Of a DNA stretch of 64,000 nt, positions 19,311 through 64,000 are shown piece after piece. The stretch lies in the IMG/VR virus record IMGVR_UViG_3300045256_000050, positions 62,001 to 126,000 of that record, one strand, 5' to 3'. The notes beneath the pieces are model-generated. The model did no database searches. It was not told the origin of the DNA and was given only the letters and a program-made list of their open reading frames with translations. How positions within the stretch are numbered: the first letter of the stretch is position 1; each line of letters begins with the position of its first letter. A program made the translations under genes and the position numbers.

Positions 19311-19754
19311 ATGAAGACTGTTGAAGAATGGATTGCGAAGTGGAATGAGACTCGGCTGTTGACCAACCTGCCGGAAGAGAAAGTCAGGCCGACGGCCTGT
19401 GCGTTGTCCAACCAGATCGGCTACAACGAGCGGAGTCAATTCCTGCCTGCGTTCCAGCGGTTGTCCATCCCCATCCTGCGGCGGGTGTTCGGCGGGATGA
19501 AGGCTAAGAATGTGACATCCAAGTTGGTTGAGACGCCGACCAAGAGCCACGTCGTCAACCTAGACCCTTTCAACGTTACGGAACTACAGTATGACGGTCA
19601 TGGTGGATACAACCTTGAGTTTGAGGCCCAGCGGACCGCCGAATACTGTGTCAAGCTCGCCGAGTACATCGACGAGTTGGCTTCGAAAGTTGATGAATTC
19701 GTCCTGCTCGGGATCGGGTGGAACGGATCAAACGTCGTCCTCTATACTGAATGA
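19311..19754 (+). CDS. Small protein whose N-terminal half is paralogous to the N-terminus of the major capsid protein
   Basis: KWNETRLL...TACALSNQ...FQRLSIPILRRVF aligns with KWAKTKLL...TAVLLENQ...FKRISIPLVRRIY of the capsid gene at 63114. Confidence 0.75.
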   Translation: MKTVEEWIAKWNETRLLTNLPEEKVRPTACALSNQIGYNERSQFLPAFQRLSIPILRRVFGGMKAKNVTSKLVETPTKSHVVNLDPFNVTELQYDGHGGYNLEFEAQRTAEYCVKLAEYIDELASKVDEFVLLGIGWNGSNVVLYTE

Positions 19755-19761
19755 AGGAAAG

Positions 19762-20433
19762 ATGAAGATTTACTTAGCAGACATCAAGCCGCAACTGCGG
19801 ATCGCCTGGAAGAATGCCTTCAGGGGCGTAGAGAACGTCCAGGTGTACGAGCGGGGCATTGGCTCCATTCTCGACCTGGAGGTTGACGCCCTGGTCAGCC
19901 CGGCCAACAGCTTCGGGTTTATGGACGGCGGGATCGACGAGTTGTACTCGGAAACCCTCGGGTGGCATGTTTCGGAACGTTTGCAGGATCACATCGTCAA
20001 GGATTTCAACGGCGAGTTGCTGATCGGGCAGGCGACCATCGTGCCGACCGACCATGCGGTGTTCAAGTATTTGATCGCCGCCCCGACGATGCGGGTGCCG
20101 ACCCGTCTGCCGGACAACACGGTGAACGTGTTCCTGGCGACTCGGGCGGCGTTGTTCCTGGCGGACAAGATGGCAAAGCGTGGGCTACTGACTTCCGTGG
20201 CGTTCCCCGGCTTGGGGACGGGCATCGGGGCGGTATCCCCGGAGAAGTGCGCACTCCAGATGCGTGCGGCTTACGATTGGGTGTTCAACAACGAACGCCC
20301 GGAGATGGAGTGGAAGAAGGTTCTCGACCACCACACCTACCTCTACACTGGACTTCGGGCAACTAACACTTGGGAGATGTCCGATAACGACCCAGACCCG
20401 GAACTCGGGTGGGAAGACGAACTAGAACAATAA
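19762..20433 (+). CDS. Macrodomain (ADP-ribose binding/hydrolase) protein
   Basis: DALVSPANSFGFMDGGID and SVAFPGLGTGIG motifs; ATG at 19762 after GGA SD. Confidence 0.9.
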   Translation: MKIYLADIKPQLRIAWKNAFRGVENVQVYERGIGSILDLEVDALVSPANSFGFMDGGIDELYSETLGWHVSERLQDHIVKDFNGELLIGQATIVPTDHAVFKYLIAAPTMRVPTRLPDNTVNVFLATRAALFLADKMAKRGLLTSVAFPGLGTGIGAVSPEKCALQMRAAYDWVFNNERPEMEWKKVLDHHTYLYTGLRATNTWEMSDNDPDPELGWEDELEQ

Positions 20434-29081: not shown

Positions 29082-29987
29082 ATGCTCAACCTACCTATCG
29101 ACCTGACTCAATCCAAGAACACCTTGTTCTTGGGCATCGGGGGCGGCTTCGACATCTACGGGGCCGTCCCTTTGTTTGCGCAAAACCACAACGCCAACAC
29201 GAGACTCTTCTTCGCCAATGTCAACGCCTCGGTCAAGAGCGTGTTGAAGTTCCCCAGGGACGATCACCCGTGTCCCGAAGGCTTCCTGGCCGGGTGGCTG
29301 GAGAAGCAGGAATACAAAACCACCGTCTACGCCCTACCTCGTGCCGGTGTGATCCCAACCCGGAACATCCTGCACACCATCATGAAAGAACACGCCATTG
29401 ACACGATTGTGTGCGTGGACGGCGGGGTGGATTCACTGATGGTGGGCGACGAGGAAGGGGCCGGGACGATTCTGGAGGACTTCGTGACGATGCAGGCGGT
29501 GAGTGCCCTGCGTGTGGCGAAGGTTCTGGTCTGCCTGGGTTTCGGCACGGAGACGGACGAGGACGTGTGCCACAACCATGCGTTACAGAACATGGCGGCT
29601 CTGGCTGCCGACGGGGCGTTCTGGGGTTGTTCTTCACTGACGAAGGACGACCCGGAATACCAAGCCTATCGAGAAGTGTGCGAGTACGCATGGGCCGACG
29701 GGAGGCGTAAGAGCCACGTCCACACGAAAGTCATCTCGGCCGTCGAGGGGAAGTTCGGGAACGACTCTCTGTACTCGGACGTGGACCCGCAACTCGCCGG
29801 GAAGACGAACACAGTAAACTACATTAACCCGTTGATGCCGATCATGTGGTTCTACGATCTCGACAAGGTGCTGGCCCGTAACAAGCTGGCGAAGTTGTTC
29901 GAGAACACCAACCTCAGCACCGACGTGTTGATGTTGTACAGGTCTAACAAGTTACCACTGAGGGAGCGACAAGCTATTCCGCTATGA
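29082..29987 (+). CDS. DUF1152-like protein
   Basis: GIGGGFD and VDGGVDSLMVGDEEGAGTILED motifs. Confidence 0.75.
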   Translation: MLNLPIDLTQSKNTLFLGIGGGFDIYGAVPLFAQNHNANTRLFFANVNASVKSVLKFPRDDHPCPEGFLAGWLEKQEYKTTVYALPRAGVIPTRNILHTIMKEHAIDTIVCVDGGVDSLMVGDEEGAGTILEDFVTMQAVSALRVAKVLVCLGFGTETDEDVCHNHALQNMAALAADGAFWGCSSLTKDDPEYQAYREVCEYAWADGRRKSHVHTKVISAVEGKFGNDSLYSDVDPQLAGKTNTVNYINPLMPIMWFYDLDKVLARNKLAKLFENTNLSTDVLMLYRSNKLPLRERQAIPL

Positions 29988-30847
29988 GAATCCGAAAAGA
30001 CGAAAAGACTCGTAACAATTTCATTCGTGCAGGCGGGGTCTGGGTCCGGGACTTCACTAAACCCAACTCCATGCCCGTGACGCCGAACGCCCTGGTCCGT
30101 CCGGCCGACAAGCCGTTGATCGTGCAGAACGAGTTCCAGAACCGGGCGTTGAACATCGGCAACATCTGCGACGAGAAGTTGGTGTTCCCGAAGGTGGTCA
30201 TCATCTCCGACGGCTACTCGTTTGCCAAGCGGGTAGACTTCATCAACAGCCTGCCGAACGACGTGGCGGTCTTCGCCGTCAACCATGCGTTGAACAAGTG
30301 GCGGACGACCGGGTTCAAGAAGCCCGTAAACCTGTATGTGGTGAATAACCCGTACCCGGAGGCGACAAGCTACCTGCCGAGAAAGTCGAAATACTACCCG
30401 GCGTGCGTGGCGTCAATGCGGACCAATGCGAAGTTCCTGAAGGACTACAAGGGGACGACGTATGTGTACGAGCCGGTTCCCGAGGAAGGGTTCGGACAAA
30501 AGGGTGACAGTCTTTACTATGTTGATGACTACCGAAACCCGGTGTGTGCGGCGATTGGCCTCGCCTACCGGATGCGTGCCCAGAAGATCATGCTCGTCAG
30601 TTGCGACGAGTCATTCGGTGAGAAGAAGGACGGGGCTGAGGAATTACCGAACGGCCTCTATACCTATCCGCAGCAGTTGATGGCCCAGGAGTTGATCGAC
30701 GCCAACCTGTACTGGTTTACTAAGAAGAAGACCGGCGAGGCGAAGGCCGCAAACTACTCAGACGGCCCAGAAAACAAGCATGCTACATATATAACCCAAG
30801 ACGAGCAGGCATTGGCATTCTTTGCGGATGAAGATGAAGACGCCTAA
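29984..30847 (+). CDS. Maf / DUF115 (MptE-like) fold protein, possible glycosyltransferase
   Basis: VIISDGYS...VFAVNHAL and PVCAAIGLAYRMRAQKIMLVSCD motifs. Confidence 0.55.
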   Translation: MRIRKDEKTRNNFIRAGGVWVRDFTKPNSMPVTPNALVRPADKPLIVQNEFQNRALNIGNICDEKLVFPKVVIISDGYSFAKRVDFINSLPNDVAVFAVNHALNKWRTTGFKKPVNLYVVNNPYPEATSYLPRKSKYYPACVASMRTNAKFLKDYKGTTYVYEPVPEEGFGQKGDSLYYVDDYRNPVCAAIGLAYRMRAQKIMLVSCDESFGEKKDGAEELPNGLYTYPQQLMAQELIDANLYWFTKKKTGEAKAANYSDGPENKHATYITQDEQALAFFADEDEDA

Positions 30848-33766: not shown

Positions 33767-33786
33767 GTTTGACAAGACAAACAACG

Positions 33787-33819
33787 AACACCCGGCAGAA
33801 ATGCCGGGTGTTTTCTTTT
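33787..33819 (+). terminator. Rho-independent terminator
   Basis: AACACCCGGCA-GAAA-TGCCGGGTGTT followed by TTCTTTT. Confidence 0.9.
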
Positions 33820-33826
33820 ATACGGC

Positions 33827-34066
33827 ATGAACGCCGGTTACTTTTACTGCCCGTACATCCCGTTGCAAGATTCACCCACGGTTCTTGCGCCGGAGGGGAC
33901 GGAGTTCCCACAGGATGACGCCAGAACCATTAACGACATCGTGAACGGTCATGAGCGGTGGCGGTACGACGAGGACGACTACGACCCGTACTTCGATCCG
34001 GCCTCCGTGTTCTACATGGGTGGCAGTCTGCCCATCGACTTTGACTGGCTAAAGGAAGGATTCTGA
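33827..34066 (+). CDS. Small protein with gp23 C-terminal motif and DWLKEGF end
   Basis: MNAGYFYCPYIPL matches the gp23-family AG.FYCPY.PL motif. Confidence 0.65.
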   Translation: MNAGYFYCPYIPLQDSPTVLAPEGTEFPQDDARTINDIVNGHERWRYDEDDYDPYFDPASVFYMGGSLPIDFDWLKEGF

Positions 34067-35046
34067 TGAAGATTGTTACCCGACGGGTAGAGAACCGCAG
34101 GCCCGACAAGCTCCAGCGAATCATGTCCCTGGGCGACTTCGCCGAGAAGCGTAACCAAGTGCTGATTCAGCGGAACGTCGGCGGGTTGGGCGACATCTTC
34201 ATGCACCGGATGATGTTCGAAGATTTCAAGCGGGTCATGCCCGACGCCAAGATTCACTTCGCTTGCCCCCGTCAGTACCACGACGCCGTGACTGACCACC
34301 CGTTCGTGGACAAGGTACTGGACTCGGCGACGGTGGATCGGTTTCAGTACATCGTCTCGTACAACACCACCACCGCCTGTGGCCGGTACGAACTCCGTAT
34401 GTTCCCCTATTCCGGCTTGCACCGGAGCGACATCTGGGCGCAACACTGCGGGGTTCACCTGACGAACCACAACATGCACATACGCATGACGGCCGAGGAA
34501 GTCGCCTGGGGGCGAGCGAAGTTGGAGGAGAACCGGGACCGGCCGGGGCCGATTGTCCTGATGTCGCCGGTGAGTGCGATGGAGAACAAGAACCTGCTCT
34601 ACCACCAGACGGAGGGGACGGTGAAGGGGCTTTGGGAGCGGGGGAATTGTGTGATCGGACTGCACTACAACCCGCTCATGCACTTCACCAAGTTAAACGC
34701 CCCGTGTATCTACAAGCTCTCGGTTCGGCAGTGGATGAGCGTGATTGCGGCGGCGGATTACGTCGTGAGCGTGGACACGGCGGCGTTCCACTGTGCAGGC
34801 GGGATGGGGAAGCCGCTGACGGGCATCTTTACTTTCGCCGACGGGAAGGTGTACGGGCGGTATTACAAGGGGTTCGAGTTGGTTCAACGGCACCGGGACG
34901 ACGGGGATTGGGACTGCGGGCCGTGTTACGATTGGGGCCGTTGCACGAAGACGAAGGCAAACCCGAAGCCGTGCCTGACCGAGATCACTTCGGACATGAT
35001 TCTGAAGGCAACTGACAAAATGTTTGCGAAACACTCATCTAAATAA
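34066..35046 (+). CDS. Glycosyltransferase family 9 (heptosyltransferase-like)
   Basis: GGLGDI...PDAKIHFAC; VVSVDTAAFHCAGGMGKPLTGIF; C-terminal CxPC...C...C. Confidence 0.9.
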   Translation: MKIVTRRVENRRPDKLQRIMSLGDFAEKRNQVLIQRNVGGLGDIFMHRMMFEDFKRVMPDAKIHFACPRQYHDAVTDHPFVDKVLDSATVDRFQYIVSYNTTTACGRYELRMFPYSGLHRSDIWAQHCGVHLTNHNMHIRMTAEEVAWGRAKLEENRDRPGPIVLMSPVSAMENKNLLYHQTEGTVKGLWERGNCVIGLHYNPLMHFTKLNAPCIYKLSVRQWMSVIAAADYVVSVDTAAFHCAGGMGKPLTGIFTFADGKVYGRYYKGFELVQRHRDDGDWDCGPCYDWGRCTKTKANPKPCLTEITSDMILKATDKMFAKHSSK

Positions 35047-35049
35047 GAC

Positions 35050-35292
35050 ATGCCTCAGCGTATTACACCCGTGAAGGTCATGTCCGTGAGCCAGAATGGC
35101 GAGTGCCATCTGACGATCACGTTGGAGTTGAACATCAATTTGACCGCCAACGGTGAGATCGGTGCGTCACTGCAAGCTCAGGGAGAGAAGCCTATGAAAG
35201 CCCGGCCGATTCAGGAAGACGATGATGTCGAACTTACGGTCCCGGATTTCGTATCGGGTATGAAGCTGGACTTTGGTAAACAAGTGGAGTGA
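35050..35292 (+). CDS. Small hypothetical protein
   Basis: 80-aa ORF directly upstream of the actin-like gene. Confidence 0.7.
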   Translation: MPQRITPVKVMSVSQNGECHLTITLELNINLTANGEIGASLQAQGEKPMKARPIQEDDDVELTVPDFVSGMKLDFGKQVE

Positions 35293-35297
35293 AAGAA

Positions 35298-36308
35298 ATG
35301 GCTATTGGATTCGACGCCGGAACCTACAACTTGGTGTGCTGCCACCGCAACGATAAGGGAGACTTCCTTTACCGCCGGGAGGTTAACGCCTTCTTGGAAA
35401 TGCCTCTTGAGAACAAGTTCGTCTACAACATGATGAAGAAGGCAGGCGTGCCGCTGATCCTCCGGGAAGATGCGAACGTCGCCTACGCCATCGGTGAGGC
35501 CGCTGTCGAGATGGCTTACACGATGCCCCAGATCGAGCTTCGCCGCCCGATGAAGGACGGCTGTGTCAACCCGAAGGAGCGTGACGCTTTTCAAATCTTG
35601 AACATCATGGCCCACAGCCTGATCGGGGACGTTGCGGAAGACAAGACGACCCTGTACTACTCCGTCCCGGCCAACGCCGTGAACACAGAGACGGACGCTG
35701 ACTACCACCGCAAGATTCTCGACGCCATCTTCAAGGCGTACAAGAGCAAGAATGGGTACATCGTCAACGCCCACCCGATCAACGAAGCCCTCGCCCTGAT
35801 CTACGCCGAGTTGGCGAACAAGGCGTTCACGGGCATCGGCATCAGCTTCGGGGCCGGTATGGTCAACCTGTGTTACTCGATCTTCGCCGCCCCGGTGTTC
35901 CAGTTCTCGCTGGTCAACTCGGGCGACTGGATCGACAAGCAGGCCGCTAAGGCTCTCGGCGAGAGCGTGGCGTTCGTCAACAAGGAGAAGACGAAGATTG
36001 ACCTGGGCAAAGAGCCGACGAACAACACCGAGCGGGCCATCGGCACTCAGTACAAGCTCATGATCGAGAAGACCGTCGCCGGGATCAAGAAGGGTCTGGA
36101 AGACAGCAAGAAGGGTAACACCGCCGAGGCCGTTGACGTGGTGATCGCCGGTGGCACGTCGAGTCCTCCGGGCTTCGACAAGCTGTTCGAGACGGTGCTG
36201 CGTGAGGCCGAACTGCCGATCAAGATTGGCAAGGTCATCCGCCCGGCCGACCCGCTGTACAGTGTGGCCCGTGGCTGCCTCGTAGCAGCGGAGAACGCCA
36301 ATGTCTAA
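35298..36308 (+). CDS. Actin-fold ATPase (MreB/FtsA/ParM-like)
   Basis: Phosphate-1 IGFDAGT, phosphate-2-like GISFGAG, adenosine motif IAGGTS, terminal PLYSVARGCL. Confidence 0.85.
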   Translation: MAIGFDAGTYNLVCCHRNDKGDFLYRREVNAFLEMPLENKFVYNMMKKAGVPLILREDANVAYAIGEAAVEMAYTMPQIELRRPMKDGCVNPKERDAFQILNIMAHSLIGDVAEDKTTLYYSVPANAVNTETDADYHRKILDAIFKAYKSKNGYIVNAHPINEALALIYAELANKAFTGIGISFGAGMVNLCYSIFAAPVFQFSLVNSGDWIDKQAAKALGESVAFVNKEKTKIDLGKEPTNNTERAIGTQYKLMIEKTVAGIKKGLEDSKKGNTAEAVDVVIAGGTSSPPGFDKLFETVLREAELPIKIGKVIRPADPLYSVARGCLVAAENANV

Positions 36309-36717
36309 CCGTCAGATGGCGTGCCTCGTCCCGATCTTCTGTTTCGTTGTCGGCGTGGCGGTGATGCTCAGTTGTATGGTCTGGCGGGTGGTTCCACCCG
36401 TCGGCCAGCCGATGAACCAACCCGCCCCGACAGCCCCGCCCGAGTTGAAGGGCAACAGGACGGTGATGGGCCACATCAGCACTCACCGCCTGGACGCCGA
36501 CGGGTTGATGCTGATGGTGTGTACGGACCAGTCCTGTCACAACGTTAAGATCACGAACAAATCCGAGATCATCGTAACCAACCTCAACGGTCGGCGTGAA
36601 CTCCACCACTCCTACGAGTCGGTTGCGGACATCTTGAGCAAGACCAAAGACTGTAACGCCGCCGTAGGAATCAGCGGCGGGAACGTGGAGATGGTCATCA
36701 TCTACTTGCCTGAATGA
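36301..36717 (+). CDS. Membrane-anchored hypothetical protein
   Basis: N-terminal hydrophobic segment LVPIFCFVVGVAVMLSCMVW; overlaps the actin-like gene stop. Confidence 0.7.
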   Translation: MSNRQMACLVPIFCFVVGVAVMLSCMVWRVVPPVGQPMNQPAPTAPPELKGNRTVMGHISTHRLDADGLMLMVCTDQSCHNVKITNKSEIIVTNLNGRRELHHSYESVADILSKTKDCNAAVGISGGNVEMVIIYLPE

Positions 36718-36726
36718 AAGGAAACA

Positions 36727-37191
36727 ATGGCAGCTAACATGTTTGGAATCGATATGGAAGAGAGTTTCTTGGATCACGACGAAGTGGTCAAGATGCTGGA
36801 GGCGGCGGGCACCCGATGTGCCTGGGATTTCAACACGGCCCTGGGCGACACGATCCGTGAGAAGTACGAATCCCTGTACATCAAGGTTGTGGAAGTCACC
36901 AACGTCCTGATTCGTAAGGGGGCGAGCGGGTTGTTCTGGATTTGTGCCTCGCCGGAAGTCGCCTCGATCTTCGAGGTTGCGACGATGGGCTTCTACCCGA
37001 CCAGTGCGGAACAGATCGAGTTGGGCACCAAGAAGGTTTACAAGCTCGGGGTCATGCAACGCCGGTGGAGCATCTACGTTGACCCGTCGCTCGACGGCAA
37101 CAAGGTTTTGATCGGGTGTGGCGAACACAAGATGCACGAGGGCGACGAAAAGAGCTACGCCGCAATGACCGTGGCTAACTTTGTCATCTGA
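36727..37191 (+). CDS. Small protein paralogous to the C-terminal half of gp23 major capsid protein
   Basis: WICASPEVASIF...GVMQRRWSIYVDP...NKVLIG resembles gp23-family FII.S..VAS.L...G.L.G.Y.VY.D...VGYKG. Confidence 0.7.
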   Translation: MAANMFGIDMEESFLDHDEVVKMLEAAGTRCAWDFNTALGDTIREKYESLYIKVVEVTNVLIRKGASGLFWICASPEVASIFEVATMGFYPTSAEQIELGTKKVYKLGVMQRRWSIYVDPSLDGNKVLIGCGEHKMHEGDEKSYAAMTVANFVI

Positions 37192-37217: not shown

Positions 37218-37258
37218 GAGCCGCAGCATTTTCGGGTGCTGCGGCTTATATATTTCTT
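37218..37258 (+). terminator. Rho-independent terminator
   Basis: GCCGCAGCA-TT-TTCG-GG-TGCTGCGGC followed by a T-rich tail. Confidence 0.8.
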
Positions 37259-37862: not shown

Positions 37863-38363
37863 ATGGTTGAAGAACGTACCTTTATCCACAAGTTCGTGAA
37901 CGACTTGGGCGTTGCCGCCTACCTGCTGATGCACGGGTACACCGTGATCGGGAAGAAGGCTAAGTCGATCTTCTTCGAGTGTCATAACGAAGAAGAGGCC
38001 CAGGAGTTCGATAAGATGGTTCTCGAATATCAGCCGCCAAACGAGTTCTACACGTTTGATAGCTGTCTGATGTTCTTGAAGAAGATCAACGAGCAAGTCC
38101 CTGCTCAACTGGACGATTCCATCCACAAGGTCGTCAGTGACCTGGGTGTGGCTGCGTACTTGCTAATGCACGAGTACCGGCCGAATGCGATGGGCCTGAA
38201 GGTGATCGGGAAGCGTGGTAAGCACGTTTACTTCGAGCATCCGGCTGGTCGGGGCGAGGACTTCAAGCGGCTGAGCTACGAGTATCTGCCGAGCCAGTTC
38301 CAGACCTACGACAGCAACCTCATGGCATTGAAGAAGATTGGGGAATATCTACCCGACGAGTGA
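37863..38363 (+). CDS. Tandem two-domain protein (DUF5659-like)
   Basis: Internal duplication IHKFVNDLGVAAYLLMHGY / IHKVVSDLGVAAYLLMHEY. Confidence 0.7.
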   Translation: MVEERTFIHKFVNDLGVAAYLLMHGYTVIGKKAKSIFFECHNEEEAQEFDKMVLEYQPPNEFYTFDSCLMFLKKINEQVPAQLDDSIHKVVSDLGVAAYLLMHEYRPNAMGLKVIGKRGKHVYFEHPAGRGEDFKRLSYEYLPSQFQTYDSNLMALKKIGEYLPDE

Positions 38364-38381
38364 TTTTGATCCTTTTTCGGG

Positions 38382-38388
38382 TATATAA
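38382..38388 (+). promoter_or_regulatory. Candidate late promoter box TATATAA (also at 2326, 30788, 33138, 41760, 59483)
   Basis: AT-only heptamer recurring upstream of gene starts in a GC-rich genome; resembles the T4 late promoter TATAAATA. Confidence 0.5.
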
Positions 38389-38410
38389 ATCATTCGAGAG
38401 GGGAAACGTT

Positions 38411-41005
38411 ATGCTATTGAGTTTTGACGATTTCCGAAAGACTCGGCGGCAATCCGCCATTGCCGAGTCTTCGGTACTGGAAGCAATCGACCACATGTTC
38501 GACCAGTTCAAGGTCGATCTGTCCGAGTCCGCACGGCTCAACGTCGTTCTTACTGAACACTACGACCCGCTGGCACATTTCGTAATGGAATCGGTTCTGC
38601 GGGAAGACGAGCGTCAAAACAAAATCTTCCTCGAAGCCTACATCGACTACTGCAAAAAGAACTTCCATAACTACATTATCGAGGCGACCAGCACGGGCGG
38701 GGCGTTCGACGCAACTGCGTTGAAGAAGAACCTCGTCAATGCACTGAACCAATTCTCCAAGCAGGTTAAGGTTCAGATCGCCAAGATCATCAATACATCT
38801 CGTACATCAGCCGATCCGTCAGCGGATTCGTCTTTAAGTCCTCCTCCTCATTCTCACAGCGGAGACGAGGGCGGGTCGGCTGGTATTACACCCCCAGGTC
38901 CGAGTGGTATGCCGAAACCGGCAACCGCCGCTGGGTTGGCGGGGGCAGGGTTCAAACCTGCCGGTTCCGCCTCGACTCCACCGTCTGCCCCGGCACCGGG
39001 TTCTGAAGAAGAAGCCCCGACATCCGCAGCCGCACCGGCACCCAAGAAGGGAGGCTGGCCGTGGCGGCGTTTCGATACGTCTAAGGGCAACCTCCTGAGC
39101 CGTGGCCTGAAGGGCGTGGCGAACCTCGTTCGCACCCCGCTCCATTGGGCTGCTAACAAAATCCGTAGTGCGTGGAGAGGCGACAGCCTGCCCGAAAACG
39201 TCGTCAATGCGATGGCCCTCCTGTTGGAAGAGGCCGCTAACGAGCAGCTTGAGAAGCTGATGAAGGACGTTGACGAGTTGACGGCAACTCTTGAGAAATA
39301 CATCAGCGACCAGATCGACAAGTACGCTGCGGCCCTCGGTGCGATGCCGAAGCCGACCGGCCCGACTGGCACGCCTGAAGTGACCCCGACCGGCCCGGCC
39401 GGTGCCGCTGATGCGGTCAAGCCGGAAGCTCCGGCCGAGAAGGCATTGCCGCCTGAGAAAGTTGCAGCCGCTACGGGCGTTGACCCCGAAGCTGCTAAGG
39501 CTGGTGCGGCTGAAGGTGCAGACCCGCTCGCAGAACGGGTGAAGTTCCTGAAGTCCATCCTCGGCGGGCATCGGTTGAACAACTCGTTCCTGAAGGCTCT
39601 CCAGGCCGCACTGACGAGCGTGGACAGCGGGGCCGCTATCCGTGCCCGGCCGATGATTAAGAAACTGATCGCTGGCATCGCCAGCGACACTCCGAACGAC
39701 GACTGGAGTCGGTTCGGCGGCACCGCTAAGAAGTGGCGTAGTCGGGCCATCCCGGCTATGGATATTCTGAAGCAGGCCGTGTACAACGCCATGCAGAAGA
39801 AGAACGCCGGTCAGCCGGTTGACCTGTCCGACGAGATCATCGACCTGATGCGTAACGAGGACAAGCGGGCGAAGGTAGACATGGCTGGCATCTTTGACAA
39901 GATCAAGGGTAAGGCCGCTGCCGCTACCGGCACCACGCCTCCGGCCGCAAGCACGCCGCCGCCTGCTGGCTCTAAGCCAGCAGCAGGTTCGCCGCTCCCG
40001 AAGCCGCCGCTTCCGGGTACGGCACCGATGGATACCCGTAAGCCGGGTCAGCCGCCAGCCCCGGTTAGCGGCACGGCCCCAGGGGCGGGTGCGTCGAAGA
40101 TTAAGGGCGATGCCAACACCGACGTGACTGGCAGCGGTACACAAACCGTCAACGTGAACGGCAAAGAAGTTGATCCGACGACTGCTGTGAAGGCGGTGGT
40201 GGCAAGCGTCACGAACGCCAAGCCGGGTTCGCCGCTCGAAGTCTTCGCCGACATGGACGAGAACGACGACTTCTTCACCAAGTACCTGCCGCCGCTCGCA
40301 CAGCGGGCCGTCAGCCTGTCCTTGTTGAAGAACGACCCGTTGACGCCGGACAAGATCGTTGAACTGGTGAAGGCGGCTGTTCGCAACACGAAGGACAAGG
40401 TTCCGTTCCCACCGGAAGTGCTGGCGTTCGCCGGGGTTGATGCAACTCCGTCGTCCACGCCTCCGGCAAAGCGTCCGGGGTCTGAAGCCCCGACCGCTGC
40501 TCCCGAGGCTGGCAAGGTTGCTCCTGAAGCCAAGCCGGAAGCCGGTAAGCCAGAAGCACCGAAGGTTGCTCCTGAAGCCAAGCCGGAAGCCGGTAAGCCA
40601 GAAGCCCCGAAGGCTGGCGGCATGAAGATGTCGGAAGACCCGAATGCCCAGAAGGCGTTGGAAGCGTACCTCGCTGCTAAGAACCCGAAGGCTGCGGGCA
40701 ACGCACACTACCCGGTTTCGATCCGGCTGACGGCCATCCGTAACGCTATGGCGAAGGACGGCCTGGGTTCGATTGAAGAACTGGAAGGCATGTCGCCGGA
40801 ACAACTGGCACTCAAGATTAAGGGTGCGGAAGTCGGCGTAGAGAAGCCGACCGAAGCCCCGAAGGAAACTCCGAAGGAGGCTCCAAAGGAAGCCCCGAAG
40901 CCAGAGGCTAAGAAGGGCGAGGAGAAGAAGCCGGAAGAGAAGAAGGAAGCTCCGAAGCCGGAAGAGAAGAAGAAGGACGGCGAGGGCGACGTAAAAAAAA
41001 AGTAA
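38411..41005 (+). CDS. Large Pro/Ala/Lys-rich low-complexity protein, putative internal head protein (864 aa)
   Basis: N-terminus MLLSFDDF; TATATAA 29 nt upstream; capsid-like codon usage. Confidence 0.8.
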   Translation: MLLSFDDFRKTRRQSAIAESSVLEAIDHMFDQFKVDLSESARLNVVLTEHYDPLAHFVMESVLREDERQNKIFLEAYIDYCKKNFHNYIIEATSTGGAFDATALKKNLVNALNQFSKQVKVQIAKIINTSRTSADPSADSSLSPPPHSHSGDEGGSAGITPPGPSGMPKPATAAGLAGAGFKPAGSASTPPSAPAPGSEEEAPTSAAAPAPKKGGWPWRRFDTSKGNLLSRGLKGVANLVRTPLHWAANKIRSAWRGDSLPENVVNAMALLLEEAANEQLEKLMKDVDELTATLEKYISDQIDKYAAALGAMPKPTGPTGTPEVTPTGPAGAADAVKPEAPAEKALPPEKVAAATGVDPEAAKAGAAEGADPLAERVKFLKSILGGHRLNNSFLKALQAALTSVDSGAAIRARPMIKKLIAGIASDTPNDDWSRFGGTAKKWRSRAIPAMDILKQAVYNAMQKKNAGQPVDLSDEIIDLMRNEDKRAKVDMAGIFDKIKGKAAAATGTTPPAASTPPPAGSKPAAGSPLPKPPLPGTAPMDTRKPGQPPAPVSGTAPGAGASKIKGDANTDVTGSGTQTVNVNGKEVDPTTAVKAVVASVTNAKPGSPLEVFADMDENDDFFTKYLPPLAQRAVSLSLLKNDPLTPDKIVELVKAAVRNTKDKVPFPPEVLAFAGVDATPSSTPPAKRPGSEAPTAAPEAGKVAPEAKPEAGKPEAPKVAPEAKPEAGKPEAPKAGGMKMSEDPNAQKALEAYLAAKNPKAAGNAHYPVSIRLTAIRNAMAKDGLGSIEELEGMSPEQLALKIKGAEVGVEKPTEAPKETPKEAPKEAPKPEAKKGEEKKPEEKKEAPKPEEKKKDGEGDVKKK
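40514..40612 (+). repeat. 48-bp tandem duplication (KVAPEAKPEAGKPEAP x2)
   Basis: AAGGTTGCTCCTGAAGCCAAGCCGGAAGCCGGTAAGCCAGAAGC at 40514 and 40562. Confidence 0.95.
40982..41005 (+). other. Candidate -1 programmed frameshift / slippage site (A9 run, A_AAA_AAG)
   Basis: Codons GTA AAA AAA AAG TAA; GAGGG 9 nt upstream of the heptamer; -1 frame open to 41280. Confidence 0.6.
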
Positions 41006-56488: not shown

Positions 56489-59065
56489 ATGGCTTGGTAC
56501 GATTTCTTCAAGCTTTTTACACGGGCGTTCCAGAACGACCCGCTCGCCCAGAAAGACGGGCGGGACTTCCCGAACGCCGGTGTTTCACAACCGGACGCCA
56601 TGCCCGACGTGCGGGCGATGGCCGACGGCACGCTGGGTGGCCGTGGGTCCGTTCGCCTTCGTGACACGAACGAGATGGTTGACCTGTCCACGGTCACGAA
56701 CCGCCTCCACCGTTATAAAGAGTACGAGCGGTTGCGAAACATGCCCGAGATCGAGATGGCGATGACCGTCTTCGCCGACGAGGCGTGTCTGGCGGGCGAT
56801 ACTAAGATCGCTACCCCGGCATACGACGGGGGGTTTCGCACTCTCGAATGGCTCGCAGAGAACAAGAAGGGCGAACGCTTCCTGGTATATTGCTGGGACT
56901 TCGCAAAAGAAGACTACACGTTGGGCTGGGCCTACGACCCCCGGCTCGTTAAGGAAGAGGAAACCGTCCGGGTCATGCTCGACGACGGTAGCTCGTTCGT
57001 CGCCACCCGTGACCACCGTATCTTGACTAAGGATCAGAAGTGGCGGAACGCAGGCGAACTGAAGGAAGGCGACCTGCTGATGCCGTTCTACCGGGTGAAC
57101 CCTCGGGTCGGCGAGGATCAGCCGAAGGTCCGCCAGTTCCCCCGAATCTTCACCAACCGCAAGGGGTGGATCAACGAGCGGCAGTTCGTGGACGAATGGA
57201 AGACCGGCCGGGACGACCCGTTCTACGAGAAGGGTAACAAGTTCTGCCGAATGCTGTGCGAGGGCTTGACCGTCCGTCAAATCTACGGCGGCGGGCACGG
57301 CGACTTCGACACGATCAAACGGCACATGGAGAAGTGCGGGTTTAGTAACGCTGAACTCAAACAACTGGCGAAGAAGGAACCGGCTCGGCGGGTGATCGGG
57401 GTTGCCCCGAACGGCGTCCAGAAGGTGTACGACCTGTCGGTTGAGAAGCACGAGAACTTCTGCACGGATTGGGGTGTAGCCCACAACTGCCAGAAGGACG
57501 ACAGCGGCCGGGCGTTCCAGATCGTTTGCAAGAACCAGGACATTCAAGAAGAACTGGAGTTCCTGTGCTTCCACCGCAAGATGCTGAACCTGGATCAGAA
57601 GAAGTGCTGGAACCGGGCGAAGCAGTTGTTCATCAACGGCGACGACTTCTGGGAAGTCGTGATCGACCCGGAGAACCCGTCTCGGGGCATCGTTAACATC
57701 GTCCCGCTCCCGCCGGACACGATGTACCGTATTGAAACCACGAAGGGGCGGCTGGTCGAGTTCCAGCAGTCTAAAGAAGGCCCGGACTACGATTCGCTGG
57801 CCCGTGTCGAGGTTACGAAAGCGACTGACCTGGACTTGATGCAGGCGAAGGCCATCCGGTTTGCGCCTCAGCAGATCGTCCACATCCGTATCGGCGACGA
57901 CCGGAAGACGTTCTACCCGTATGGTGTTTCACTGATCGAAGCCGCCCGTGGCCCGGCCCACCAGTTGCGGCTGATGGAAGACGCCATGTTGGTGTATCGG
58001 TTGACCCGTGCCCCAGAACGGCGTGTGTTCTATATTGATACACAACAGTACAGCGGTGCCCGTGCCGAAGCCTTCATCGAGCGGATGAAGGATCAGTTCA
58101 AGAAGAAGAAGGTTCCGAAGCAGTTCAACGCCGAAGGGGCGAGTGCGGTTGAAGAACGGTGGCACGCACCGGCTGCGGACGAGGACTACTGGATTCCGAT
58201 CCGGCCGAACTCGAACACCCGTATCGAAACCCTCCCAGGGGCACAGAACTTGGGCGAAATCGACGATACGGTCTACTTCCGTAACAAGCTGTTCGTGTCG
58301 ATGAACTTCCCGAAGAACTACTTCAACAACGAGGACGCCCAGGCGACCAGAATCAGCCTGTCCGCCCAGGACGTGAAGTTCGCCCGGATGATCGAGCGGC
58401 TTCAGAGCCACATGGAAGACGGGCTGTGGGAACTGTGTGACCGCCACCTGAAGCTCCGTGGGTATCCCGAGGAGATGTACGAAGACCTTGAGATCAAGAT
58501 GACCCCGCCGAGCGATTGGCGGGAACTCACCCGGTCCGAGGTTGTTACGGCTCGCATCGGTAACGCCGGGTCGTTGAAGGGTTCTCAGTTGATGAGCGAC
58601 TTCGACATCCTGACGAAGTGGATGAAGTACCCGGACGACGAGGCCAAGATCATGCTGGCCCGGCTGAAGATTCAGAAGATCGAAGACCTGAAGTTGCAGA
58701 TCATCGCCCAGAACCCGCAGTTGTTGGGTGTTGGTCTACCGTCGGATGACGAACAACAGGTCGGTGCCGAGGCCGGGTTGGGCCAGCCGATGTTGGGCGG
58801 CGACCCGATGGCTGGTGGCGGTGCCCCTCCGGGCGGTATGCCACCGGCTCCGGGTGGTGCCCCGATGGGTGGCGCTCCTGGTGCGGCCCCGCCGCCTCCG
58901 GGTGGCGGTATGCCTGGGATGAGCATGGCGGCGGAAACCCCGCCTGTGGGTGGCGGTCAGCCGCTCCCCCAACCGGCGTTGGACGACATCGCCAAGTACG
59001 ACCTGGAGATCAAGGATTACGGGTCGGAGCAGGACGAAGAAGAGATCGACAACTCGGAGATGTAA
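56489..59065 (+). CDS. gp20: Portal protein (T4 gp20-like) with intein
   Basis: PEIEMAM..FADEA, FINGDDFWE, QLRLMEDAMLVYRLTRAPERRVFYID, EDYWIPIR...IETLPGAQNLGEIDD. Confidence 0.95.
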   Translation: MAWYDFFKLFTRAFQNDPLAQKDGRDFPNAGVSQPDAMPDVRAMADGTLGGRGSVRLRDTNEMVDLSTVTNRLHRYKEYERLRNMPEIEMAMTVFADEACLAGDTKIATPAYDGGFRTLEWLAENKKGERFLVYCWDFAKEDYTLGWAYDPRLVKEEETVRVMLDDGSSFVATRDHRILTKDQKWRNAGELKEGDLLMPFYRVNPRVGEDQPKVRQFPRIFTNRKGWINERQFVDEWKTGRDDPFYEKGNKFCRMLCEGLTVRQIYGGGHGDFDTIKRHMEKCGFSNAELKQLAKKEPARRVIGVAPNGVQKVYDLSVEKHENFCTDWGVAHNCQKDDSGRAFQIVCKNQDIQEELEFLCFHRKMLNLDQKKCWNRAKQLFINGDDFWEVVIDPENPSRGIVNIVPLPPDTMYRIETTKGRLVEFQQSKEGPDYDSLARVEVTKATDLDLMQAKAIRFAPQQIVHIRIGDDRKTFYPYGVSLIEAARGPAHQLRLMEDAMLVYRLTRAPERRVFYIDTQQYSGARAEAFIERMKDQFKKKKVPKQFNAEGASAVEERWHAPAADEDYWIPIRPNSNTRIETLPGAQNLGEIDDTVYFRNKLFVSMNFPKNYFNNEDAQATRISLSAQDVKFARMIERLQSHMEDGLWELCDRHLKLRGYPEEMYEDLEIKMTPPSDWRELTRSEVVTARIGNAGSLKGSQLMSDFDILTKWMKYPDDEAKIMLARLKIQKIEDLKLQIIAQNPQLLGVGLPSDDEQQVGAEAGLGQPMLGGDPMAGGGAPPGGMPPAPGGAPMGGAPGAAPPPPGGGMPGMSMAAETPPVGGGQPLPQPALDDIAKYDLEIKDYGSEQDEEEIDNSEM
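56786..57487 (+). mobile_element. Intein (234 aa) in the portal protein
   Basis: Block A CLAGDTKI, block B VATRDHRIL, block F VYDLSVEKHENF, terminal HN followed by +1 Cys. Confidence 0.95.
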
Positions 59066-61467: not shown

Positions 61468-62133
61468 ATGGACAAGATTTTGCTGATCGATTGCTGTGAC
61501 CACGGCGGGGTTACTCTCAATCTTAATGAATCAACTACCGTGCGCAACGGTAAGACCATCTTCCGTGGTAAGTTCCAAGAAGCGGAAGCCGTCAACAAGA
61601 ACAAGCGTAGCTACCCATTCGACGTGTTGGACGAGAACGTTCACGGTCTTCAGGCAGCTATCAAGGACCGTCGTCTCATCGGTGAATTGGATCACCCGAC
61701 GGACTCTATCGTACACTTCGCCAACGCATCTCACCTTGTTACGAAACTGTGGTGGGAGGGCAACATCCTGATGGGTGAGGGCGAAATCCTGAACACCCCC
61801 AGCGGCAAGGTTCTTAAGGCACTCCTTGAGGACGGCGTGAAGGTGGGTATTAGCTCCCGTGGCGTAGGCAACGGGAAGGTAAACGAGGACGGCGTACTCG
61901 TTATTGGTGAAGGCTACAAGCTTATTACCTTTGACGCTGTTGCTGATCCTTCCACGTTCGATGCCTTCCAAGAGAAGGTTGTATCGGGCCGTCGGAACGA
62001 AAGCCGTGAAACGAAGGAAATTGCTAAGAATGTGACTGTGAAAAATGAGAGCAGTCGCATAGATACCACCGTAATCAAAGAGACGTTGATCGCAGCCCTC
62101 GGTGGGATCGTGAACTCAAAGGTTGCTGAATAA
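61468..62133 (+). CDS. gp21: Prohead core protease (T4 gp21-like)
   Basis: GELDHP, SHLVTKLW, NTPSGKVL, VGISSRGVG, TFDAVADPS. Confidence 0.95.
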   Translation: MDKILLIDCCDHGGVTLNLNESTTVRNGKTIFRGKFQEAEAVNKNKRSYPFDVLDENVHGLQAAIKDRRLIGELDHPTDSIVHFANASHLVTKLWWEGNILMGEGEILNTPSGKVLKALLEDGVKVGISSRGVGNGKVNEDGVLVIGEGYKLITFDAVADPSTFDAFQEKVVSGRRNESRETKEIAKNVTVKNESSRIDTTVIKETLIAALGGIVNSKVAE

Positions 62134-63113: not shown

Positions 63114-64000
63114 ATGATGAATTCCCGATTCTTGAACGAAGCTAAGGCCATCGAACAAAAGTGGGCCAAGACTAAGCTTCTCAACAAGATTGAAGACCGC
63201 TTCACTCGTTCCGCCACTGCTGTTCTTCTGGAAAACCAGTGGTTGATGAATGAAGCGATGACGGATACGGGCGACATTGCCAGCTTCAAGCGTATTAGCA
63301 TTCCGCTGGTTCGCCGTATCTACCCGCAGTTGATTGCGAACAAGATTGTGTCGGTTCAGCCGCTTCTCGGCCCGACGGGTCTTGTGTACTACCTCCGCTT
63401 CCGCTACTCGTCCAACAAGGGCGGCATGCGTGGCGCAAGCCTCCAGGGCGGCTACCCGAGCGACGACGCAGCATCGCTGCAACAGTTGGCTTCCGGTGAC
63501 GGCAACCTGGAAATCTACTACACCCACCAGTTCGTACAGAACGAAGTTTCTTCGACGCATCCGGGTGGTAGCAGCGTAGCAGCAGTGTACGCACCGCTGG
63601 AACACACTCCGGTTCTTCCGGGTGCGTTCACCGGCACCGTGTACGACGGCAGCACCGCAATCCAGACCTTCATTGTGTCCACGTCTGGCGTGTTCACCTT
63701 CACGGACATCGGCACCCCGACCGTCAAGGCTCAGTCGAGCGGTTCGTCCATCGACCTGAACACCGGCGAAGTTGTTCTGCAATGGACCGGCGGCGATCCT
63801 GGTGACAACCACTTCGTTGCCTCCTACGAGTACAACATGGAGTGCAACCAAGACCTTCCTGAAGTCAACCTCGTCGTTGAGTCGGAAGAAATCGCAGCCA
63901 AGACCCGTAAGTTGAAGGCTGTGTGGAGCTACGAGGCTCAGCAAGACCTGCGTTCCCAGCACAACCTGGACGCCGAAGCTGAGTTGACGAGCGTCCTGGC
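63114..64000 (+). CDS. gp23: Major capsid protein (gp23-like), partial; runs off right edge
   Basis: Manual translation (absent from ORF track): TAVLLENQ, IPLVRRIYP, VSVQPLLGPTGLVYYLR, AAKTRKLKAVWSYEAQQDL...LDAEAEL. Confidence 0.97.
   Translation, partial: MMNSRFLNEAKAIEQKWAKTKLLNKIEDRFTRSATAVLLENQWLMNEAMTDTGDIASFKRISIPLVRRIYPQLIANKIVSVQPLLGPTGLVYYLRFRYSSNKGGMRGASLQGGYPSDDAASLQQLASGDGNLEIYYTHQFVQNEVSSTHPGGSSVAAVYAPLEHTPVLPGAFTGTVYDGSTAIQTFIVSTSGVFTFTDIGTPTVKAQSSGSSIDLNTGEVVLQWTGGDPGDNHFVASYEYNMECNQDLPEVNLVVESEEIAAKTRKLKAVWSYEAQQDLRSQHNLDAEAELTSVL

Follow-up and report, generated by a model that had tools for sequence, protein, structure and literature searches.

The window analysed here is a 64,000-nucleotide stretch (positions 62,001 to 126,000) of the IMG/VR virus record IMGVR_UViG_3300045256_000050, a 244,986-bp sequence from a huge phage that CheckV estimates to be 48% complete. 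At 36727–37191 on the + strand it contains an ATG-initiated open reading frame of 154 codons, which we refer to as mini-A. An AAGGA Shine–Dalgarno-like sequence is located at 36718–36722, 4 nt upstream of the ATG and directly after the stop codon of the upstream ORF (36715–36717). An intrinsic-terminator-like hairpin with a 13-bp stem, seven GC pairs and a T-rich tail follows at 37218–37247, 27 nt after the mini-A stop. A second hairpin of this type (12-bp stem, seven GC pairs, T tail) is found at 33786–33813, and together the two bracket a six-gene unit that begins with mini-B (33827–34066) and ends with mini-A. The genes between them, all on the + strand, encode a glycosyltransferase family 9-like protein (34066–35046; PF01075, 24.8 bits against a cutoff of 22) that is translationally coupled to mini-B, an 80-residue protein with no family match (35050–35292), a volactin-family actin-like protein (35289–36308; PF25216, E = 3.6e-68) and a 138-residue protein with an N-terminal hydrophobic helix (36301–36717). 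No T4-type late promoter (TATAAATA) occurs in the window, and only one weak sigma-70-like site was found.

The phage's own major capsid protein (MCP) gene begins at window position 63114 on the + strand, runs past the end of the window at 64000 and encodes 481 residues in full (L001:1339–2784). Mini-A matches the Pfam Gp23 family (PF07068) with an E-value of 1.6e-8 and a score of 34.8 bits against a curated cutoff of 24.4 (31.8 bits in the genome scan), over mini-A residues 20–135 and profile positions 191–311 of 376. PHROG 138 ‘major head protein’ matches with an E-value of 3.7e-5. In a BLASTP comparison with its own MCP, residues 15–139 of mini-A are 47% identical to MCP residues 303–428 (E = 1e-27), and the last ~12 residues align with the MCP C-terminus. 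The original prediction, which described a stand-alone protein resembling the gp23 C-terminal region with a good Shine–Dalgarno sequence and a terminator, is therefore supported. It requires one refinement: the match is not to the whole C-terminal region, since MCP residues ~428–468 are absent from mini-A.

An alignment of 14 stand-alone homologs with five MCP C-terminal regions indicates that every mini lacks the same ~40 residues and retains the terminal strand. In mini-A, a short linker at the deletion junction (about residues 131–141; 37117–37149) replaces the missing segment and is followed by the terminal β-strand (YAAMTVANFVI; 37156–37188), which is homologous to the C-terminus of the MCP itself. 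The block most conserved between minis and MCPs spans W33–L50 (WDFNTALGDTIREKYESL; 36823–36876) and covers a loop and the start of the long A-domain helix. The corresponding block, WDFNTALGDTI.EKYESL, is invariant or nearly so in both minis and MCPs, while the rest of the sequence diverges. The minis also share a signature (KGA.G.FWI) at a position where the MCPs have TLRGG.NW.

The AlphaFold2 model computed from this alignment has a pLDDT of 77 and a pTM of 0.73. It contains a tail predicted to be disordered (residues 1–12, pLDDT below 50; 36727–36762), a short helix (17–26) that aligns with the end of the long MCP helix, a strand, a long helix (43–63), a strand, a second helix (76–85) and a five-stranded sheet region that ends in the C-terminal strand (144–150). 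The sequence of the tail is conserved in the 91% and 69% relatives; in other lineages this position carries a shared peptide tag (described below), Tat-type signals or a Zn-ribbon-like motif. A PDB sequence search with mini-A found nothing significant, but Foldseek returned HK97-fold capsid and encapsulin shell proteins (phage P1, T4 gp23, T4 gp24 and encapsulins). An exhaustive VIA-align search placed T4 gp23 first (Z = 12.4, 142 residues aligned) and also identified 2PK8, the prototype of the Family 4 ‘A-domain encapsulins’, aligned over 88 of its 94 residues (Z = 7.4, rmsd 2.6 Å). The predicted fold is thus that of a free-standing HK97 A-domain. In the general HK97 topology the chain leaves the A-domain for a P-domain excursion and returns for a final A-domain strand, suggesting that the deletion in mini-A corresponds to this excursion. 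This assignment is an inference, because our AlphaFold2 model of the full MCP is reliable only in the insertion domain and A-domain (pLDDT below 50 at residues 48–125, 244–302 and 422–466).

Comparisons with relatives indicate that mini-A is a working gene. Relative to its 91%-identical relative, mini-A has a dN/dS of 0.09 at a dS of 0.67; more distant pairs are saturated at synonymous sites, with dN/dS values of about 0.2–0.3 where these can be computed. The 69% and 91% relatives retain the same neighbors, a volactin-like actin and a ~140-residue membrane protein; in the relatives L014 and L015 the actin gene and genes for 131–147-residue proteins are syntenic with those next to mini-A. A single-sequence search identified 13 stand-alone homologs of 137–212 residues, and a profile built from these identified 157 proteins. 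By simple motif criteria, these include at least 45 minis and 19 ‘midi’ proteins of 277–330 residues. The midi proteins consist of the MCP insertion domain joined directly to a mini-type A-domain. In P0034, for example, residues 5–130 align with MCP 113–242, MCP ~246–300 is skipped and residues 150–282 align with MCP 300–418 (E = 2e-68). ‘Micro’ proteins of 79–108 residues hold only the two A-domain helices. Family members are located on contigs of 331, 476, 477, 634, 664, 669 and 673 kb, and the only hit in the annotated-phage collection is LR756511.1, an unannotated 595-kb uncultured phage.

In a maximum-likelihood tree of A-domain regions (63 rows), the ten MCPs form one clade with 100/100 support on a long branch, with tips of 0.008–0.16. 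The mini and midi proteins interleave, requiring at least nine changes of state, and their tips lie mostly between 0.3 and 1.4 (the median across the whole tree is 0.42). Mini-A from the window groups with its orthologs rather than with its own MCP. The MCPs of the clade are at least 79% identical to the window's MCP in the 80 best of 386 IMG/VR matches. Mini-A therefore belongs to an old paralog lineage that evolves much faster than the MCP while remaining under purifying selection. A sliding comparison of synonymous divergence between mini-A and its own MCP, intended to detect gene conversion, was ambiguous: pS dips over the conserved helix but also over a divergent stretch. The gene is accessory. 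The profile finds it in G001, a complete 533-kb relative, and a divergent form is present in LR756511.1, but it was not found in G002 (459 kb, 91% complete), which has the same MCP, or in the assembled parts of three partial records (G003–G005).

Two additional MCP-piece genes are present in the window. Mini-B (79 residues) begins with a 23-residue stretch that is 65% identical to MCP 425–447 (E = 1e-10; Gp23 profile positions 313–332), inside the segment missing from mini-A, followed by an acidic linker and a C-terminal DWLKEGF. Its dN/dS is 0.04–0.15. Its stop codon overlaps the start of the glycosyltransferase gene, and the same overlap arrangement with the next gene is kept in three close relatives (L016–L018). 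Homologs exist in a distant relative (L006) and in LR756511.1, where the piece spans most of the missing segment and is preceded by a Zn-ribbon-like motif. Mini-N (19311–19754, + strand, 147 residues) resembles MCP 15–80 over its first ~70 residues, a region that includes part of the conserved N-terminal block (35% identity, E = 2.4e-4 in a search of the phage's own genome; 33% over 73 residues, E = 2.6e-5 by BLASTP). We do not regard mini-A and mini-B as a dedicated split pair, since they lie about 390 kb apart in LR756511.1 and are parallel members of one tagged family in G001.

Further pieces are found in relatives. Pfam detects Gp23 profile positions 3–72, 146–196, 205–258 and 296–331 in separate ORFs of G001 and others in G003 and G005, all above the cutoff, and all of these ORFs end in a short shared peptide. 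In G001, 17 ORFs carry [YH]RS[ILV]DD[DP], against none in shuffled controls, and in 15 of them the peptide lies 6–14 residues from the C-terminus. Its codons vary freely at synonymous positions, indicating that conservation is at the level of the peptide rather than the DNA. Five of the 17 are MCP pieces (residues 55–102, 218–310, 318–368, 400–448 and 438–463, at 43–88% identity). One is a piece of the gp21-type prohead protease in which the motifs expected to contain the catalytic His and Ser are replaced, and which is thus presumably inactive, and one matches the PrkA C-terminal domain. The mini-A of G001 carries the tag at its N-terminus, as do the homologs P0023 and P0086. The window's lineage and G005 use a different C-terminal tag ([DN]W.[KRQ][ED]GF), present on mini-B and on one other ORF of the partial genome. 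Judging from sequence comparison, the window's mini-A has no recognizable copy of either tag.

Mini-A retains the end of the spine helix, the two A-domain helices, the A-domain sheet and the terminal strand, but lacks the N-arm, insertion domain, E-loop and most of the P-domain in addition to the ~40-residue segment, and it therefore cannot by itself join a shell. We hold the identification as an A-domain paralog of the MCP with high confidence; the mechanism is inferred from metagenomic sequence alone, and we favor the following only tentatively. Mini-A may display the conserved capsomer-forming face of unassembled MCP and thereby occupy a factor that would otherwise bind the MCP. The partner has not been identified. 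Our preferred candidate is a host MCP-sensing immune receptor of the Avs7/Dsr1 type, which is reported to grip this A-domain region, with a capsid-binding protein of a satellite or competitor as the alternative. Lacking the other MCP parts, the mimic would bind without completing the signal, or would simply titrate the binder. A nearly invariant MCP, combined with variable, fast-evolving stand-alone copies of its recognizable parts, fits a conflict role. The pieces vary between genomes and include the conserved N-terminal block: MCP 57–101 aligns with the conserved N-terminal region of T4 gp23, the candidate equivalent of Gol, the EF-Tu-binding trigger of Lit, and relatives encode this block as a separate tagged gene. 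Some observations argue against this model. Expressed Gol fragments activate Lit (PMC3014915), so a fragment that binds a sensor could activate rather than block it. Two mini-A variants (P0013 and P0091) carry twin-arginine export signals, which are not expected for a cytoplasmic decoy, and the window's mini-A appears to be untagged. The tagged set in G001 is enriched in head-morphogenesis proteins, which also fits a role in prohead biology. No published precedent for phage MCP mimics was found. Mini-A, mini-B, mini-N and the midi protein have no PADLOC hit, the only match being a sub-threshold one to REase_II (E = 0.0088, 13.3 bits) for the micro protein P0116; none has an NCBIfam hit, and the ESM Atlas added nothing beyond HK97 families.

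The main rival model, which we consider less likely, is that mini-A binds the MCP or capsomers directly. It could cap the A-domain interface of unassembled MCP as a chaperone or modulator, preventing premature or aberrant polymerization or tuning the size of a very large capsid, or it could sit on capsomer centers as a minor or decoration protein. Mini-A retains the helices that form the contacts around the capsomer axis in HK97-fold capsomers (PMC8346489, PMC8569155), its most MCP-like block is its most conserved, and the tagged relatives in G001 include pieces of two prohead components, the MCP and the prohead protease. MCP paralogs with assembly roles are also known (gp24 and Ccm). On the other hand, the gene is accessory, lies ~26 kb from the head module in a unit with a glycosyltransferase and an actin-like gene, and evolves far faster than its supposed partner. 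The Tat-type signals of some variants and the PrkA fragment that shares the tag also argue against this model. A complex prediction for full MCP plus mini-A gave no answer (score 0.00, without controls) and is not counted either way.

It is unlikely, though possible, that mini-A is a dominant-negative weapon that enters the capsomers of co-infecting related phages or satellites through A-domain contacts and poisons shell assembly. The accessory, fast-evolving and lineage-variable repertoire would suit this role, one fragment would fit many competitors given the conservation of the MCP, and mobile elements are known to use capsid-protein homologs to redirect another element's assembly (PMC8569155). 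However, the producer's own MCP carries the same conserved interface, so self-poisoning would be expected, and no immunity mechanism is visible. Similarly doubtful is self-assembly into pentamer- or hexamer-like rings or larger scaffolds that organize the products of neighboring genes, as hypothesized for Family 4 A-domain encapsulins. The match to 2PK8 and the position of mini-A as the last gene of a conserved unit are consistent with this idea, and Family 4 proteins occur in operons with enzymes and were found in complex with one (PMC8346489). Mini-A does not belong to PF08967 by sequence, however, its neighbors differ between lineages, and self-assembly of Family 4 proteins is itself unproven. 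A non-functional remnant of a partial MCP duplication is very unlikely: although one HNH endonuclease gene lies just downstream of the MCP and another near mini-B in L006, and partial copies of conserved genes are common debris, the low dN/dS, a frame kept intact from 91% down to ~30% identity, an excision that follows domain boundaries, the confidently predicted fold, and the Shine–Dalgarno sequence and terminator all contradict it.

A broader and more speculative possibility, which we consider unlikely but not excluded, is that huge phages of this clade, whose capsid protein is too constrained to change, keep a modular and rapidly turning-over library of small genes that each display one piece of a head protein: the N-terminal conserved block, the E-loop and spine helix, the α5–α6 pair, the strands after the A-domain, the whole A-domain, the insertion domain plus A-domain, or a presumably dead prohead protease. 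Many of these are joined to a common short peptide tag, and mini-A would be the most widespread member. Such a library would work as self-mimicry against host sensors or parasites that recognize these proteins and would represent a new class of counter-defense. If the pieces are mimics, they would show how a phage with an immutable capsid can answer immune receptors that read capsid folds, and would provide probes for such receptors; if they bind the capsid protein instead, they bear on how very large capsids are assembled. In either case, the family provides natural domain excisions of the HK97 fold, of roughly 150 and 300 residues, that can be expressed directly.

We found no description of phage-encoded A-domain-only MCP paralogs, of the midi architecture or of the tags in full-text literature searches or in Pfam, PHROGs, NCBIfam or PADLOC. 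Mini-A satisfies the sequence criterion for the Gp23 family, and T4 gp23 is its best structural match, but it lacks the complete HK97-type architecture that allows shell formation and belongs to a separate, fast-evolving lineage. The only described proteins that consist of an HK97 A-domain alone are the Family 4 A-domain encapsulins (PF08967/DUF1884; PDB 2PK8, Pyrococcus furiosus PF0899), a small set whose function is also unknown (PMC8346489). Mini-A shares this architecture, with about 40 additional N-terminal residues that form a tail, the end of the spine helix and one strand, but there is no detectable sequence relationship: a Pfam scan at E-values up to 10 returned only Gp23. The Family 4 proteins are cellular, from hyperthermophilic archaea and a few Bacteroidetes, and are located in two-gene operons with metabolic enzymes, whereas mini-A is phage-borne and derived from a gp23-type MCP, and its origin looks independent. 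The T4 vertex protein gp24 is likewise a gp23 paralog encoded by the same phage as the MCP, but it is a full-length HK97-fold protein that forms pentons; only one full-length Gp23 match was found in each of the two complete genomes and in G002. SaPIbov5 Ccm is a capsid-protein homolog kept by a mobile element in a conflict setting, where it redirects helper capsid size (PMC8569155), but it has the complete HK97 fold, occupies pentamers and is encoded by a satellite rather than by the phage whose MCP it resembles. Finally, the T4 Gol peptide shows that an isolated gp23 segment can be biologically active and is read by host immunity (PMC3014915). Gol is a region of the full-length protein studied as an artificial fragment; it is not the A-domain, and it activates the defense system rather than blocking it.

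Mini-B is encoded by a 79-aa gene at positions 33827–34066 (+) of the window. Its first 23 residues are 65% identical to residues 425–447 of the major capsid protein (MCP), which lie inside the segment missing from mini-A, the small capsid-paralog protein. This region is followed by an acidic linker, and the protein ends in DWLKEGF. Mini-B is under strong purifying selection (dN/dS 0.04–0.15) and is conserved in distant relatives. Its stop codon overlaps the start of the next gene, and a GT9-type glycosyltransferase (34066–35046, +) is translationally coupled to mini-B in this window. The mini-B stop likewise overlaps the start of the next gene in three close relatives (loci L016–L018), and a GT2+GT9 fusion lies near mini-A in a distant relative (L006:4689–6605). 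A phage-encoded actin-like protein of the Volactin family (PF25216, E 3.6e-68; window 35289–36308, +) is syntenic with mini-A in close relatives. An 881-aa Pro/Ala/Lys-rich, low-complexity protein with repeated KPEAGKPEAPK-like units and no family match is encoded at 38360–41005 (+).

A further capsid-like ORF in the window, mini-N (19311–19754, +), encodes 147 aa. The first ~70 residues resemble MCP 15–80 (33–35% identity, E about 1e-4 to 1e-5), whereas the C-terminal half is unrelated to the MCP. Elsewhere in the phage's own genome (G000), a second ORF (29763–30101, −) ends in the lineage tag (NWKRDGF), with no parent found, and a 791-aa protein (145689–148064) has short partial look-alikes of 135 aa (156777–157184) and 156 aa (128106–128576). 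A weak further MCP-like stretch (about MCP 78–99) lies at 203235–203369 (−). Fragment genes may extend beyond the MCP in this genome too.

In a relative, a 118-aa ORF in locus L113 (positions 19525–19881 of the partial record G005) carries two MCP C-terminal pieces in permuted order, with a stretch resembling MCP ~454–478 preceding one that resembles ~426–447, followed by the tag EDVDWVKEGF. HNH-type endonuclease genes lie next to the MCP gene (L001:2861–3481, just beyond the window and downstream of the MCP gene) and near mini-B of a distant relative (L006:12315–12896), and could play a part in generating gene pieces.

Two sister mini-A variants from short metagenomic contigs, P0013 and P0091, start with twin-arginine (Tat-type) signal peptides (SRRNALKG... 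and SRRQAIQG...). This suggests export of a folded A-domain and is not explained by any cytoplasmic model. Two different mini-A proteins, P0058 and P0069, are both listed with a longest contig of 669,302 bp from the same source, indicating that some genomes probably carry two mini-A paralogs.

In G001, the complete genome of a relative (the IMG/VR record of L081; loci L116–L142), 17 small ORFs share the peptide [YH]RS[ILV]DD[DP](W), usually located after a Lys-rich linker near the C-terminus and often in overlapping tandem arrays (e.g. 58150–58437, 351043–351617, 453411–453812, 517817–518784 and 524328–524810). Shuffled controls give none. Five of these ORFs are MCP pieces and one is that phage's mini-A, which is tagged at its N-terminus. 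A tagged 127-aa ORF (G001 247046–247429, −; L128:7049–7429) matches the PrkA serine kinase C-terminal domain (PF06798, 40 bits). No full-length parent was found in that genome, so the tagged family is not restricted to head proteins. A tagged 156-aa ORF (G001 238157–238627, −; L127:18160–18627) is a fragment of the gp21-type prohead protease (PHROG 207, E 1.5e-15) and is 39% identical to residues 44–166 of the 228-aa Peptidase_S77 gene in the head module. The motifs that hold the expected catalytic His and Ser are replaced, so the fragment is probably an inactive pseudo-protease.
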